A stretch of 64,000 bases of DNA from Octopus sinensis (lineage: Eukaryota), in assembly GCF_006345805.1 (NCBI RefSeq), contig NC_043000.1:39432001-39496000 (forward strand), written 5' to 3'. The notes below the pieces were generated by a model. The model searched no databases. It had not been told where the DNA came from and saw only the letters and a list, made by a program, of their open reading frames with translations. Shown in pieces: positions 25,751-61,640 of the stretch (positions within the stretch are counted from its first letter, which is position 1; each line of letters begins with the position of its first letter). Position numbers and translations under genes: made by a program.

Positions 25751-25801
25751 CTTCAATTGAAGCAGCAATGTTTTCATTCGGCTGTGATTCTATCTCTCTT
25801 T
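25751..25801 (-). CDS. 51-nt phase-1 micro-exon 9: EREIESQPNENIAASIE
   Basis: Acceptor ...CTGTCTTATCTATTTTCAG|, donor AAG|GTAGGA. Confidence 0.75.
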
Positions 25802-28800
25802 CTGAAAATAGATAAGACAGAGACAGTCATTTAACAAAATAAATAAATGAGTAACATTTAATCGATATATATATATATACAAACCTTTCTACCGGAAGCA
25901 CAAGGGCTCAAAATTTCGGGGAAGAGATACGTGCGTAACTGGTACTTAATTTATCGGCCCCGAAAAGATGTAAGGAAAAGTTGACTTAGGCGGAATTTGA
26001 ACTCATCAATATATATAATAAAGGTTACAATACAATGAATATGTTTTTACTATAAATTATATGCAATTTGAACCAAGTTTAAGAAGCTTAATGCGAAATT
26101 CAAAATTGATAAATTTCCATTTGTTTAACGCACGGGGACGTTACAGAATTAGAGTCAAGGCTCGTTTCAACTCGACTCAACATTTTATTGCGACAAGCAC
26201 ATTTAGTGCTTGATCATTGATATTTTTGTATTTAATTCAAAGAATTTTTCTTGAACTGTAACCAACATCAAAATTGCCAAAAGTGTTACACAAAGGACAA
26301 TAAGCAATTAAATGGCAAGATATCAAAAGACCCTTTTTTCTAAAACCTTCCTTCTAATTATAAGGTTTCCAAATGAGCAGACACCATGGAATTTGCATAA
26401 ACATTGATAGTCTAATATAAAAGTTTCCATGTAAAGATATTATATTATTATTATTATTATTATTATCAATATTGTTGTTGTTGTTGTTGTTGTTGTTGTT
26501 GTTGTTGTTGTTGTTGTTGTTGTTGTTGTTGTTGTTGTTGTTGTTGTTGTTGTTGTTGTTGCTGCTGCTGCTGCTGCTGCTGCTGCTGCTGCTGCTGTTT
26601 TTGTTGTGTGTTGTCATTGCATAACTTCCAAAGCTGGAGATGTACTACGGTGCTAGCTGTCCACTACCAGTGAACTAAGGTAACACCTCTAATTTTTCGC
26701 GACCACCATCCGGAGTATTCGAGTGCTTCCAAGCAGTACTGTTTTCTGCAAGTGCTCTACACTTATTGCAGCCCCTATTTGTTCCATGTACTTCTCAAGA
26801 TTTATACTCCCTGTTCGCAGGGCTCTAACAATTATTTTTACTACTAGCACCTTGTTCATCGACCACAACTGCTTAACCTCCCAAGCTAACCTGTCATATC
26901 TACTGATTTTTCTTTCTTCATTGTTGTCAGCTGGGCTTGCTATATCTATGATCCAGCATCATTTGCTTTCTTTCTCAATTAAAATTATGTCTGGCTACCC
27001 ACTCTCTATGTCATGGACGCACTGAATAATAAAATCCCATAGGTTCTTTGCATTATCATTTTCGATAATGCGTTCGGGTTTATGTTCGTACCACTTTTTT
27101 GCTCTGTCAAGCACATGCTTTTTTGCAAAGTGTCCAGCGGTCATTCCTTTGTAGAATCTCTTCTGATCTACACTGAATATCCTTTTCCGTTGGTGGACCT
27201 TCAGTCTTTGATTATATCTTACGATCTTTGCTTTCTCTGCAACGTAACGCCGTGTCAGTTCCTCCATTACCAGTTTCATGCCATTTCTCTAAATATCATA
27301 CCTCCTGTTCAGTGCCATGTATTTTTCTTCGCTAATAAACTCCCCGTTCTCGTTCCCGACCAAACCAGAAATGTCCTTCTAGAGCATACCTAACCCCGCC
27401 TGTATTCTTCTTTTCCACCATAAATAATTTCTTTTGTCAATCTCATTATATTTCTTTTTCTTGATATCACCACCCACATTTTTAGATACAACAATATTTT
27501 TATTATCATTATTCAGTAGATTTATTTTTATAGCGTGCTTTCACTTCACTACCGAGCGCAGCTCTGTGTGCCTTAGGTATGTGCTGTGATTTGATGTGAT
27601 GCTCTGATGGTTATTGTATGGAAAGTGTTCTGCGTAGGATGTGTGCAGTGCCTAGTAGTGCAATTTTCTATATGTTATATGTGTTTGTAAGTCCTGGTGT
27701 TTTTGTTATGTATTTGTCTGAATATTTTTTTATCATGCCTAATGCACCTACTATGATAGGAATTGTTTCTGTTTTCAGATTCCACATTCTGGTTACCTCT
27801 ATTTCCAGGTCTTTGTTTATTATTATTATTATTATTATTATTATTATTATTATGTTTTTTCCTTCTTTCTTCAAATTTTCTTCCGTTTCTCGTCGAATGT
27901 TTTCCATACACCTTGGGCAGAGAAGCTCATTGTATGCATTCCAGATTACACGCGCAAATTCACAGATAAAATATGTATTTTAATGGTTTACCCTCCTGTG
28001 GATCGGAATGCGTTTCTTATTATCGCAAACCCTGAAATCTAAGATGGGCAAGTGTCTTTTACTGTGGCCTGCGGCCGATCAAACATTATGAGTGGACTTT
28101 CAGTTTCTGTTTACCAAGTCCACTCATAATGTTTGATCGGCCGCAGGCTACAGTAAAAGACATTTGCCTTTCTTAAGATTTCAGGGTTTGCGATAATAGA
28201 AATGCATTCCAATCCACAGGAGGGTAAACCAATCATAAATAATTGAGAGATATATACACATAACATAGATATAGTCGTACAAGTACGAATATATACATAA
28301 GATATAGGGCTGTCTACAATACTTTAATTCTTTCTGTCCATTTTCCTCGCATACAACCTTGTACTAACAGACGTATAATTGAATTAGTTTGTAGTCCAAT
28401 TAGCATCTATTTCTAGCGTACAAGTGTTGCCAAATCAGCGCCCTTTATTATTGTATTTTTATATAATGCAGTTCAATATATATGTGTGAGTGTGTGTATG
28501 TGTATTTAATCAAAGGGTATTTTATTATATATTGTAGTATGATTATGTGTGTTTGCACCCCTTGTGTGTGTGCGTATGCATATATGTGTGCGTGTGTGTA
28601 TGTGTATATGTGTGCGTGTGTGCATATGTGTGTGCGTATCTATTTTTCCTTTTTCGGAGCTGTTTGTGCTATTTTCTCTAAAAATCTCTAAAATAATAAT
28701 AATATTAACAATAACCATCAGAGCATCACATCAAACCACAGCACATAACCAAGGCACACAGAGCAGCGCTCGGTAGTGAAGTGAAAGCACGCTATAAAAA

Positions 28801-29061
28801 TAAAACTACTGAATAATAATAATAATAATAATAATAATAATAATAATAATAATAATAATATATAACAAGTATAAATATAACAAGTAACTGCAGAATATGT
28901 GGAGATGGACAAGAAACAATAAATCATATTATCTCTGCCACTCTGCCATCAATTTAACGCATGCCAGCAAATCTTTGTATTAAAGATATTTTTAAACCTG
29001 ACGTAAAATATTGAATGCGATTTGTTGCCTGGCATGAAGATGGGTTTTAAATGACTCCTAC

Positions 29062-29112
29062 CTTCAATTGAAGCAGGAATGTTTTCATTCGGCTGTGACT
29101 CTCTCTCTCTTT
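29062..29112 (-). CDS. 51-nt phase-1 micro-exon 8: ERERESQPNENIPASIE
   Basis: TTTTCAG| acceptor, AAG|GTAGGA donor. Confidence 0.75.
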
Positions 29113-60290: not shown

Positions 60291-60429
60291 GAGACCATAA
60301 TCTCGTGGCCTATGCCAGGAGCGTAACCAGCCCACTTATTCGTAACTTTTCCTTCTTTGGACACCAAAACTCTGCTTGCGAATACCTGTTGAGGCAAGTG
60401 AAATTAAAATCAAAATCAAATTCGATGAC

Positions 60430-60965
60430 TGGCGTCCGTGCTAGCGGGGTGCAAAGAGCACCATACGAGTGTGATCATTGACAGAGCGGCTAACCGGCTT
60501 CCGTGCAAGTGGCACTTAAAAGGCACCATTCGAATGTGATCGTTACCAGCGTCGCCTTACTGGTACTCGAGTCCCGTGCTAGTAGAGTATTAAGAGCACC
60601 ATCCGAGCGTGATCGTTGCCAGAGTGGCTACCTGGCCTCCATGCCGGTGGCACGTAAAAGACACCATTTGAGTATGATCGTTACCAGCATCGCCTTACTG
60701 GCCCCTGTGTCGGTGGCATGTGTAAAAGATTCGAGCGAGGTCGTTGCCAGTACCGCCTGACTGGTCCCGTGCCGGTGGCACATAAAAGCACCCACTACAC
60801 CCTCGGAGTGGTTGGTGTTAGGAAGGGCATCCAGCTGTAGAAACTCTGCCACATCAAGATTGAAGCCTGGTGCAGCCATCTGGTTCGCCAGCCCTTAGTC
60901 AAATCTTCCAACCCATGCTAGCATGGAAAGCGGGCGTTAAACGATAATGATTATGATGATGATGA
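60430..60965 (+). repeat. Repeat tail with ~65-70-bp internal subrepeats ending in (GAT)n
   Basis: GCACCAT.CGAG.GTGATCGTT.CCAG occurs 4-5 times, followed by GGAAGGGCATCCAGCTGTAGAAAC...CCCATGCTAGCATGGAAAGCG. The same tail occurs at ~3375-3550. Confidence 0.75.
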
Positions 60966-61589
60966 TGTACGTTGGGCTGAGATTCGTCGAGGAAGGTCAC
61001 ACGATATCGTGGTTTGATATTGGTGTATGGGTAAAAGTTAGTTGGAAAATATCACATGAAGAACAGGAAATTGACCACGTGGAGTGCAGGAAATAGACGA
61101 TGTGATGATTAGAAATCGGTTTGGATATTGGGGTGTAAGTAGAAGGGGGTGGGGGTGAATATGCAAGTATATAGTTCTATATGTGGATGTGTAGACAGTC
61201 TCATATAACTTTGCGTGCATCTGTATATCGATGCGAATGAGCGTATCTATACATGGGAGCTAACGCACAAGTTTGCACACGCACACAAACACACACGCTT
61301 GGACGAACATGCAGGCGCACGTAAACACACATACACACATATAGGTAAACATGCACACATGCATGCGAATGCATATGTACATATGAATGAATACTCATGT
61401 GTGTATATGGGCGTATGCGCGTGTATGTGTGTTTGTGTGTGTGCTCGCGTTTCTCCAAGCAAGTGTGTGTATATTTGTGTGTGTGTGTGTGTGTGTGTGA
61501 GAGAGTGAGTGTCTGTGTGTATTTGTGTGTGAGTCTGTGGGCGCCCATGTACATGAGCGCACATAAAGTTTGCTAAAAGTGACACCTAC

Positions 61590-61640
61590 CTTTATTTTGC
61601 ATCATATCGTGCGTAAACAGTTTTGGTGTTTCCCCAGTCT
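61590..61640 (-). CDS. 51-nt phase-1 micro-exon 1: (E)TGETPKLFTHDMMQNK
   Basis: Acceptor ...CTGTCTTATTTTTTCTCAG|, donor AAG|GTAGGT. Only the phase-1 frame is open. Confidence 0.78.

Follow-up and report, generated by a model that had tools for sequence, protein, structure and literature searches.

Tandemly duplicated symmetric micro-exons in LOC115211119, a gene predicted to encode a receptor-like membrane protein of Octopus sinensis

The window, a stretch of 64,000 nucleotides (nt) of Octopus sinensis DNA, harbors on its minus strand nine very small exons of LOC115211119, a gene that is annotated but uncharacterized. Eight of these micro-exons are 51 nt long and one is 48 nt, and each belongs to a cassette of exon and flanking intron that has been copied several times. 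The window is 100% identical to chromosome CM016862.1 of the assembly GCA_006345805.1 (referred to here as locus L001), in keeping with the cephalopod host assumed by an initial annotation that was made from the letters alone. Positions are converted by window x = 77331 - L001 position. In this article, we describe the micro-exons and their gene, the way in which the cassettes have multiplied and diverged, and the type of protein that they appear to extend.

The micro-exons and their gene

The nine micro-exons, all found at the coordinates that had been given for them in the initial annotation, are as follows.

61590 to 61640, minus strand: micro-exon m1, 51 nt, phase 1-1, peptide (E)TGETPKLFTHDMMQNK
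54453 to 54500, minus strand: micro-exon m2, 48 nt, phase 1-1, peptide (E)NGQVLKHGYVPVNYE
51910 to 51960, minus strand: micro-exon m3, 51 nt, phase 1-1, peptide (G)PSITLYDADSRPESSE
48482 to 48532, minus strand: repeat micro-exon 1, of the older rA type, peptide (G)SERESQPNENIPASIE
39172 to 39222, minus strand: repeat micro-exon 2, of the young rB type, peptide (E)RERESQPNENIPASIE
35838 to 35888, minus strand: repeat micro-exon 3, rB type, with the sequence of repeat 2
32414 to 32464, minus strand: repeat micro-exon 4, rB type, with the sequence of repeat 2
29062 to 29112, minus strand: repeat micro-exon 5, rB type, with the sequence of repeat 2
25751 to 25801, minus strand: repeat micro-exon 6, of the older rA type, peptide (E)REIESQPNENIAASIE

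All nine share the same splice context, which consists of CTGTCTTAT, a pyrimidine tract and AG on the acceptor side, and AAG/GTAGG at the donor. A combined pattern of this acceptor, a body of 42-60 nt and this donor retrieves exactly these nine exons on the gene strand and none on the opposite strand, whereas CTGTCTTAT itself is found in 11 copies in the window against 0.8 expected, a number reached in 0 of 100 shuffles. Coordinates and splice context had been read exactly. Translation of the nine micro-exons in phase 1 gives a peptide identical to the one first proposed. As had also been claimed, phase 1 is the sole open frame in the divergent exons m1, m2 and m3, and frame 0 is open too in all but one of the six repeat exons. 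Little can be concluded from an open frame by itself, as 16 codons taken at random from the window are free of stops with a probability of about 0.48; it is the common splice context and the homology of the introns on which the non-randomness of the exon pattern rests. In three loci (L001 and the loci L002 and L003, introduced below), each of the 21 cassettes keeps the splice context, a length of 48, 51 or 54 nt and an open phase-1 frame, and their length varies solely by insertions and deletions (indels) of 3 nt.

A further copy of CTGTCTTAT, at 58381-58389 on the minus strand, borders on an inverted repeat of 93.6% identity (57495-57869 / 58428-58051) beside a reverse-transcriptase fragment. 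A tenth cassette at this position was rejected, since no acceptor AG, open frame or donor follows CTGTCTTAT; the copy may be a decayed cassette or the product of chance. Pseudo-exons borne by transposons were rejected as well, the cassettes being confined to the gene strand and in register with the gene models.

The initial annotation had called the segment hidden, but the NCBI annotation already includes every one of the nine exons. The concatenated tail peptide matches XP_036357870.1 (uncharacterized protein LOC115211119 isoform X2, 243 amino acids (aa)) with E = 9e-53, and the same protein cluster includes isoform X1, XP_036357869.1 (294 aa). Three upstream exons, E1 (31 nt), E2 (123 nt) and E3 (231 nt), are located just past the right end of the window (window-equivalent 67330-65933). 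When these are spliced in silico to the nine micro-exons and a distal terminal exon, the product is X1, residue for residue, and the exons hence form one coding segment in the order that had been put forward. Isoform X2 is composed of m1, m2, m3, repeat 1, any one of the four identical inner repeats, repeat 6 and a proximal terminal exon; it has three repeat exons fewer than X1 and the other copy of the duplicated terminal exon. In the RefSeq model of X1 the micro-exons account for nine of the 13 coding exons and 456 of the 885 coding nt (52%). A full-text literature search for LOC115211119 found no paper, and a search for 'Octopus' with 'microexon' found nothing relevant. The 3' end of the gene comprises the following features.

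21677 to 21720, minus strand: proximal terminal coding exon, (G)PFHGTCSTIITIH and stop, used by RefSeq X2
17620 to 17663, minus strand: distal duplicated terminal coding exon, (G)PFHGTFSTIITMH and stop, used by RefSeq X1
17580 to 24470, minus strand: tandem duplication of the 3' terminal-exon block, in which 17580-20413 corresponds to 21637-24470 (2.8 kb, 98.4% identical)

It is because of this block duplication that the gene has two alternative last exons. Both copies of the block also contain an (AT)n tract with a 74-bp minisatellite of 3.5 copies (20033-20414 and 24162-24426).

The internal coding exons of the gene are all multiples of 3 nt and of phase 1-1, so any cassette can be duplicated, lost or skipped without a change of frame. 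Skipping without frameshift, as originally envisaged, fits the annotated isoforms, all of which are predicted models: X1 and X2 of LOC115211119 differ in micro-exon content, as do isoforms X1, X2 and X3 of a paralog, LOC115232395, which differ solely in this respect. On these models, combinatorial splicing of the cassettes is plausible, and the micro-exons would be transcribed and spliced in vivo. Mutually exclusive splicing of the Dscam type was rejected, given that X1 has all nine micro-exons in series and the isoforms of the paralog have several of each type.

Duplication and divergence of the cassettes

The repeat exons belong to a tandem array of large units, and blocks of conserved intron sequence accompany all of the micro-exons.

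24311 to 50119, minus strand: tandem array of a ~3.35-kb exon-plus-intron cassette, found by self-comparison, 96-99.6% identity
41114 to 46401, minus strand: fragments of a retrotransposon without long terminal repeats (non-LTR), with RVT_1 at 42487-43029 and zf-RVT at 45991-46401
26020 to 26330, minus strand: conserved upstream intron block of repeat exon 6, with exact equivalents at 29465, 32813, 36241, 39574 and 48882
52020 to 52330, minus strand: homologous upstream intron block of m3
55840 to 56150, minus strand: homologous upstream intron block of m2, moved ~1.4 kb from the exon by inserted sequence
61690 to 62000, minus strand: homologous upstream intron block of m1

Successive donors in the array are 3311, 3352, 3424 and 3334 nt apart and then 9310 nt apart across the retrotransposon insertion. 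The inserted retrotransposon fragments, together with the ~740-bp direct repeat that flanks them (41114-41850 = 45571-46306), account for the 9.3 kb that separate repeat exons 1 and 2. The four inner units, with exons that begin ERERESQ, are recent four-fold copies of the 3.35-kb unit, 98-99.6% identical and 0.3-1.8% apart. Microsatellites of the form (TGT)n/(TTG)n, with 57-96 copies, occupy the same place in successive units (29774-29976, 33122-33403 and 36565-36737) but differ in length. The outer units (GSERESQ... and EREIESQ...) differ over a ±600-nt alignment by ~10% from the inner units, and ~3% separates them from one another and from either repeat unit of the paralog; over the BLAST segment spanning each exon, the flank differences in these same comparisons are all 3-5%. 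The ±600-nt MAFFT alignment had produced a spurious flank divergence of 20% from large indels, and it was replaced by counts within the exon-spanning BLAST high-scoring segment. An open reading frame (ORF) of ~120 aa (MESVLRRMCAVPSSAIFYML…) is also found once per 3.35-kb unit on the plus strand (27618-27983, 30981-31346, 34405-34776 and 37740-38300) and probably represents part of a repeat element that was copied together with the unit.

An older layer of homology connects the four types of cassette (m1, m2, m3 and the repeat type). Their flanks are collinear and 68-82% identical, with homology that extends upstream for ~340 nt in m1, m3 and the repeat type and downstream for up to 167 nt in m2, m3 and the repeat type. 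Comparison between types gives 75% identity for the 75 nt upstream of the exon and 58% for the 130 nt downstream, but only 43% for the exon bodies, which is near the floor of a forced alignment. The homologous upstream intron blocks noticed in the initial annotation are borne out, since GTCAAGGCTCG is found upstream of all nine exons (exactly at six, and with 1-2 mismatches at 52157, 55972 and 61821) within a block of ~300 nt that has a mean column identity of 72% across cassette types. The block contains two small predicted hairpins, with 0 compensatory changes in 16 pairs, and shows no covariation of the kind looked for as a sign of competing RNA pairing (docking/selector). It corresponds to no known RNA, as a search of Rfam at gathering thresholds gave no match in the window.

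As the flanks are still collinear between types, all nine exons descend from one exon-plus-intron unit, and homology that reaches into the introns is the result of duplication at the DNA level rather than convergence. Growth of the protein by tandem duplication of exon together with intron, the mechanism first suggested, is upheld both by the 3.35-kb unit and by the older collinear intron homology. Old duplications of one cassette would have produced the four types, and a recent burst would then have copied the 3.35-kb unit four times.

The exons can also be compared with those of closely related loci. These are the locus of the paralog LOC115232395, on another chromosome (CM016860.1, locus L003), and an unplaced scaffold of 29.8 kb (VCDQ01000338.1, locus L002), which carries a third arrangement of the gene and is 95-99.7% identical to L001. 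The divergence of these young pairs, counted within the BLAST segment spanning each exon, was as follows.

Micro-exon m1, L001 vs L002/L003: 6/51 exon differences, flanks 1.0-1.6%, p = 3.5e-5 to 2.7e-4
Micro-exon m2' vs m2: 8/48 and a 3-nt indel, flanks 3.3%, p = 2.7e-4
Micro-exon m3, L001 vs L002/L003: 6/51, flanks 2.7-3.2%, p = 0.0035-0.007
E2, the transmembrane exon: 14/123, flanks 1.5%, p = 5e-8
Penultimate ectodomain exon: 10/87, flanks 2.1%, p = 3e-5
Last ectodomain exon: 0/152, flanks 0.9%, no excess
Repeat exons: 1-4/51, flanks 3.3-4.8%, no excess

The variant micro-exon bodies (m1, m2' and m3) are 12-17% divergent inside introns that are 1-3% divergent. By the method of Nei and Gojobori, m1, m3 and E2 pooled show 24.5 nonsynonymous and 1.5 synonymous differences, which corresponds to a nonsynonymous proportion (pN) of 0.145, a synonymous proportion (pS) of 0.032 and a pN/pS of ~4.5. 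The value of pS is indistinguishable from the pooled intron divergence of 0.019 (p = 0.23), whereas nonsynonymous sites show an excess over the introns (p = 3e-14). The differences toggle tyrosine motifs: FTHDMM vs SIYNMM (YxxM and YxxPhi), KHGYVPV vs RSEYVLV (the consensus of the immunoreceptor tyrosine-based inhibitory motif, ITIM), and TLYDAD vs ILEEAD. The tail encoded by the window contains no tyrosine motif of the form [SIVL]xYxx[IVL] or TxYxx[VI], and the ITIM consensus is confined to the m2' variant of scaffold L002 (SEYVLV) and to the Octopus vulgaris model P0005 (SEYVPV).

Positive selection would account for this divergence of the exons. After duplication, the exon bodies changed much faster than the introns, with almost all changes altering an amino acid and making or destroying tyrosine motifs; the short signaling or sorting motifs of the tail would be diversified in the process, and cassette number and exon skipping would add further isoform variety. 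A different origin has to be considered, since the introns of L001 and L003 contain kilobases that are 99-99.9% identical (for example, 4/2987 and 4/2979 differences), and the family models of O. vulgaris likewise lie on two different chromosome records. Such near-identity across two chromosomes suggests that gene conversion between the loci still goes on or that a transfer took place very recently. Under concerted evolution, conversion would homogenize cassettes and loci, and the exon patches would be micro-converted or protected from conversion rather than positively selected. The clustering of the m1 differences, six of which fall within 10 nt, would suit this explanation, as would the recurrence of the SIYN-type variant exon in L002 and L003 and the presence of both m3 variants in one O. 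vulgaris gene model. However, in the variant exons pS stays close to the intron value and is not raised alongside pN, which is unexpected for old exon islands that have been spared, and the three available loci provide no donor for the FTHD or TLYDAD patches specific to L001. We regard concerted evolution as an unlikely source of the pattern, albeit one to be taken seriously; the observations are better fit by bursts of amino-acid change after duplication than by old exon islands spared by conversion.

The number of cassettes varies as well. The O. vulgaris ortholog, model P0010, combines three repeat exons with a second m2-m3' pair, and in LOC115232395 m1, m2 and the repeat exon are each present twice and m3' once. 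On L002, E1 and E2 are 99.5% identical to those of L001, and the scaffold lacks E3, has a duplicated m1 and carries an additional m2' cassette (NGQLLDRSEYVLVPYE); the partial RefSeq model on this scaffold strings the cassettes together as m3'-m2'-m1. L002 may be a haplotig, a structural variant or a paralog. Cassette copy number is fluid between the two sister octopus species and between loci. It is rather improbable that the number of repeat exons is partly an artifact of assembly, with 3.35-kb units collapsed too much or too little, L002 a haplotig and the difference between X1 and X2 an ambiguity of mapping. The high identity of the inner units speaks for such an artifact, as do the only three repeat exons in both the O. 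vulgaris ortholog model and X2, and the fact that L002 is so similar to L001 yet structurally different. Against it, the inner units differ in sequence and in the copy number of their (TGT)n tracts as distinct genomic copies would, and the issue does not touch m1, m2, m3 or the two outer repeat exons.

Elsewhere in the window, a nearly intact non-LTR retrotransposon is found just downstream of the 3' end of the gene (12777-16155, plus strand). It lies in a GC-rich (47-52%) island, and its Exo_endo_phos endonuclease ORF (458 aa) overlaps an ORF with RVT_1 and zf-RVT (699 aa). At 1019-1420 on the plus strand, a 184-bp unit repeated 2.2 times has the appearance of a short interspersed element (…GGTCGACTTTGCCTTTCATCCTTTCGGGGTCGATAAAATAAG…); ARAGORN found no tRNA in the window, this region included.

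Protein family and topology of the tail

An exhaustive HMMER search of 1.84 billion representatives returned four proteins, solely from octopus and from one Nucella. These are the O. sinensis paralog LOC115232395, with three isoforms of 367-383 aa; LOC118761365 (P0003), a partial model from an unplaced O. sinensis scaffold; a fragment from O. vulgaris; and the Nucella lapillus protein KAL8573858.1 (P0006). The protein cluster of the paralog also includes LOC115210431, the neighbor of LOC115211119, and a word-based search with the paralog as query added the O. vulgaris ortholog P0010 (567 aa). P0010 starts with a signal peptide and a ~270-aa ectodomain rich in Cys and N-x-S/T, followed by the E2 transmembrane helix, E3 with two more hydrophobic helices, the series m1-m2-m3-m2-m3'-rep-rep-rep and a terminal exon. 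The micro-exon share of this full-length protein is about one quarter (a tail of roughly 150 of 567 aa). LOC115232395 of O. sinensis similarly has a signal peptide, an ectodomain rich in Cys and N-glycosylation sites, a transmembrane helix and then the tail.

In every full-length family member, the micro-exon segment is C-terminal to the transmembrane helix and to the K/R-rich flank that follows it (MKTRKYKR or MKTCKRRR), and the signal peptide, paired cysteines and many N-x-S/T sites are on the N-terminal side. Between one and three hydrophobic transmembrane helices precede the micro-exon region, as the optional E3 adds two; since two is an even number, the side of the tail is unchanged by E3. 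With a net charge of -23 in X1, the tail is strongly acidic, and it lacks any N-x-S/T sequon. An AlphaFold model, which was built from a family alignment of only five rows and has a predicted local distance difference test (pLDDT) score of 35, gives the tail no secondary structure, places helices at the three hydrophobic segments with low confidence and makes the ectodomain beta-rich, the last being unreliable at this score. The K/R-rich flank, the signal peptide, the glycosylation sites and the even helix number of E3 all suggest that the tail is cytoplasmic. Of the 'receptor tail or stalk' proposed in the initial annotation, the tail is retained, as it follows signal peptide, ectodomain, transmembrane helix and K/R-rich flank, and the stalk is not. 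With respect to the ectodomain, Pfam gave no domain at E<=1 but only sub-threshold noise (DUF5373, DUF6377 and the Ly49 N-terminal region), and a PDB sequence search found no relative. A 'D-Y-S-G-N-V-T-C' motif resembles the F-strand signature of immunoglobulin (Ig) domains, by eye only.

LOC115210431, immediately upstream in O. sinensis, encodes the same ectodomain. Its last exon equals the exon of the paralog apart from a 1-bp gap (G vs GG), at L001 ~8129 (window-equivalent ~69202, outside the window), which truncates the frame at SNYSEM and a stop. This gap is probably behind the RefSeq split into LOC115210431 and LOC115211119 and the short alternative first exon, and the two are likely one gene; the gap itself could be a real mutation or a long-read consensus or assembly error. 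The locus might accordingly be seen as a duplicate in decay and an incipient unitary pseudogene, which produces little or no protein and whose micro-exons are relics stitched together by predictors via the intact paralog. A deletion that truncates the ectodomain frame and forces a short alternative first exon would be in accord with decay, as would protein searches that gave no transcript-derived protein and the lack of any paper found under the locus name. Yet all nine exons here and all 21 cassettes of the three loci have intact splice sites, lengths divisible by three and open frames, and a divergence that is greater in exons than in introns, and nearly all nonsynonymous, is the reverse of neutral decay. 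Furthermore, the O. vulgaris ortholog is modeled as a single intact 567-aa protein, and, with an assembly based on PacBio reads, the single-base difference may be an error of the consensus. Decay of the locus is consequently improbable. Least probable is an extracellular stalk or mucin-like spacer, which would suit an acidic peptide with much Pro, Ser and Thr and no predicted secondary structure, but which conflicts with the position of the segment after the transmembrane helix and K/R-rich residues, with the confinement of signal peptide, paired Cys and N-x-S/T sites to the N-terminal side, with the even number of E3 helices, and with a tail that has no sequon.

The nine micro-exons are very probably genuine coding exons of LOC115211119, and would form most of the acidic, unstructured C-terminal tail of a receptor-like membrane protein. 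A number of points weigh against this reading. All of the supporting proteins are computational gene models, and those of O. vulgaris may lack independence because the annotation of that species pooled transcripts, protein alignments and ab initio predictions (PMC10700109). The four inner 51-nt repeat exons are identical, so short reads cannot count how many are included, and assembly could also affect their number. The upstream 1-bp frameshift could signal decay of this copy, and no Pfam domain, solved-structure relative or confident fold points to any class of receptor. As to the mode of divergence, the selection tests rest on few sites and 26 substitutions, and part of the pattern could stem from gene conversion or micro-conversion.

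Comparison with known systems

In some respects, the gene resembles the micro-exon genes (MEGs) of flatworms such as Schistosoma. The products of MEGs are secreted and are found in glands and epithelia at the host-parasite interface, and the genes are reported to be restricted to platyhelminths (PMC4350168). Both systems have very small symmetrical exons (48-54 nt and divisible by three in octopus) separated by kilobase introns, isoforms that arise by micro-exon inclusion (predicted isoforms in octopus), and disordered, fast-evolving products. However, in octopus the micro-exons supply no more than the tail of a membrane protein whose ectodomain is large and conventional, the product is predicted to be anchored in the membrane rather than secreted, and the animal is a free-living mollusc. 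There is no sequence similarity to MEGs, given that the HMMER search returned only the octopus proteins and one Nucella protein. The octopus gene is not a member of the MEG family, and the two architectures are alike without being homologous.

Tandem duplication of symmetric phase 1-1 exons is characteristic of the classical modular-exon class of animal extracellular and receptor proteins. As in that class, neighboring exons in octopus match in length, phase and splice context and lie between homologous introns, and the protein grows in steps of 17 residues. The octopus module differs in being a linear peptide of 16-18 residues and not a folded domain, in having been copied four times very recently, and in having exon bodies that outpace the introns. 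In vertebrate receptors of the Ig superfamily, such as PECAM-1/CD31, the cytoplasmic tail is made from several short, alternatively spliced exons. The arrangement of ectodomain, single transmembrane helix and many-exon tail is shared, as is the alteration of tyrosine motifs by exon inclusion, and some of the octopus cassette variants match the ITIM consensus or YxxM. In contrast, neither Pfam nor the PDB sequence search gives the octopus protein an Ig domain, its structure model is unreliable and there is no homology; moreover, the tail exons of octopus are mutual paralogs whereas those of PECAM-1 are not.

The contrast between conserved introns and fast exons is mirrored in the genes of conotoxins, in which introns are highly similar between copies and the coding exon diverges fast under positive selection (PMC3862624). 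Conotoxins, however, are secreted venom peptides encoded by a few conventional exons, whereas the octopus cassettes form a tandem array within one gene and specify a putative intracellular tail. The final comparison is with KAL8573858.1 of Nucella lapillus, which has six tandem 17-residue repeats, EEGAYTEQPNGIIACSV, with the period of the octopus repeat exon, its E-x-QPN-x-x-I-x-x-S-[IV]-E pattern and 44% identity. Outside the repeat the protein does not align, and within it the repetition inflates the similarity; the likeness may reflect deep homology or convergence.

The mechanism, duplication of a symmetric micro-exon cassette, is already known in kind, and the gene had been annotated beforehand. 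What is new is the setting of the exons in a receptor-like protein, the four-fold expansion of one unit in very recent times and the surplus of amino-acid-changing differences in the micro-exons. The first reading of the window also demonstrates that a correct multi-exon gene structure can be recovered from raw animal DNA, and the comparison flags a probable split in the O. sinensis RefSeq annotation (LOC115210431 and LOC115211119). More broadly, we tentatively suggest, as a possibility, that a young receptor family of the O. vulgaris/sinensis lineage diversifies its intracellular tail by cassette duplication, positive selection on tyrosine motifs and combinatorial skipping. If so, diversification similar to that of micro-exon genes would have arisen inside a receptor, independently of the flatworms and not on a secreted product. 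The gene offers a compact and datable case of a disordered receptor tail that appears to be built and rewired by the copying of a symmetric micro-exon cassette. Should transcripts confirm the combinatorial inclusion of these exons, it would become a tractable model for the evolution of short linear signaling motifs and an independent parallel to the MEGs of flatworms.

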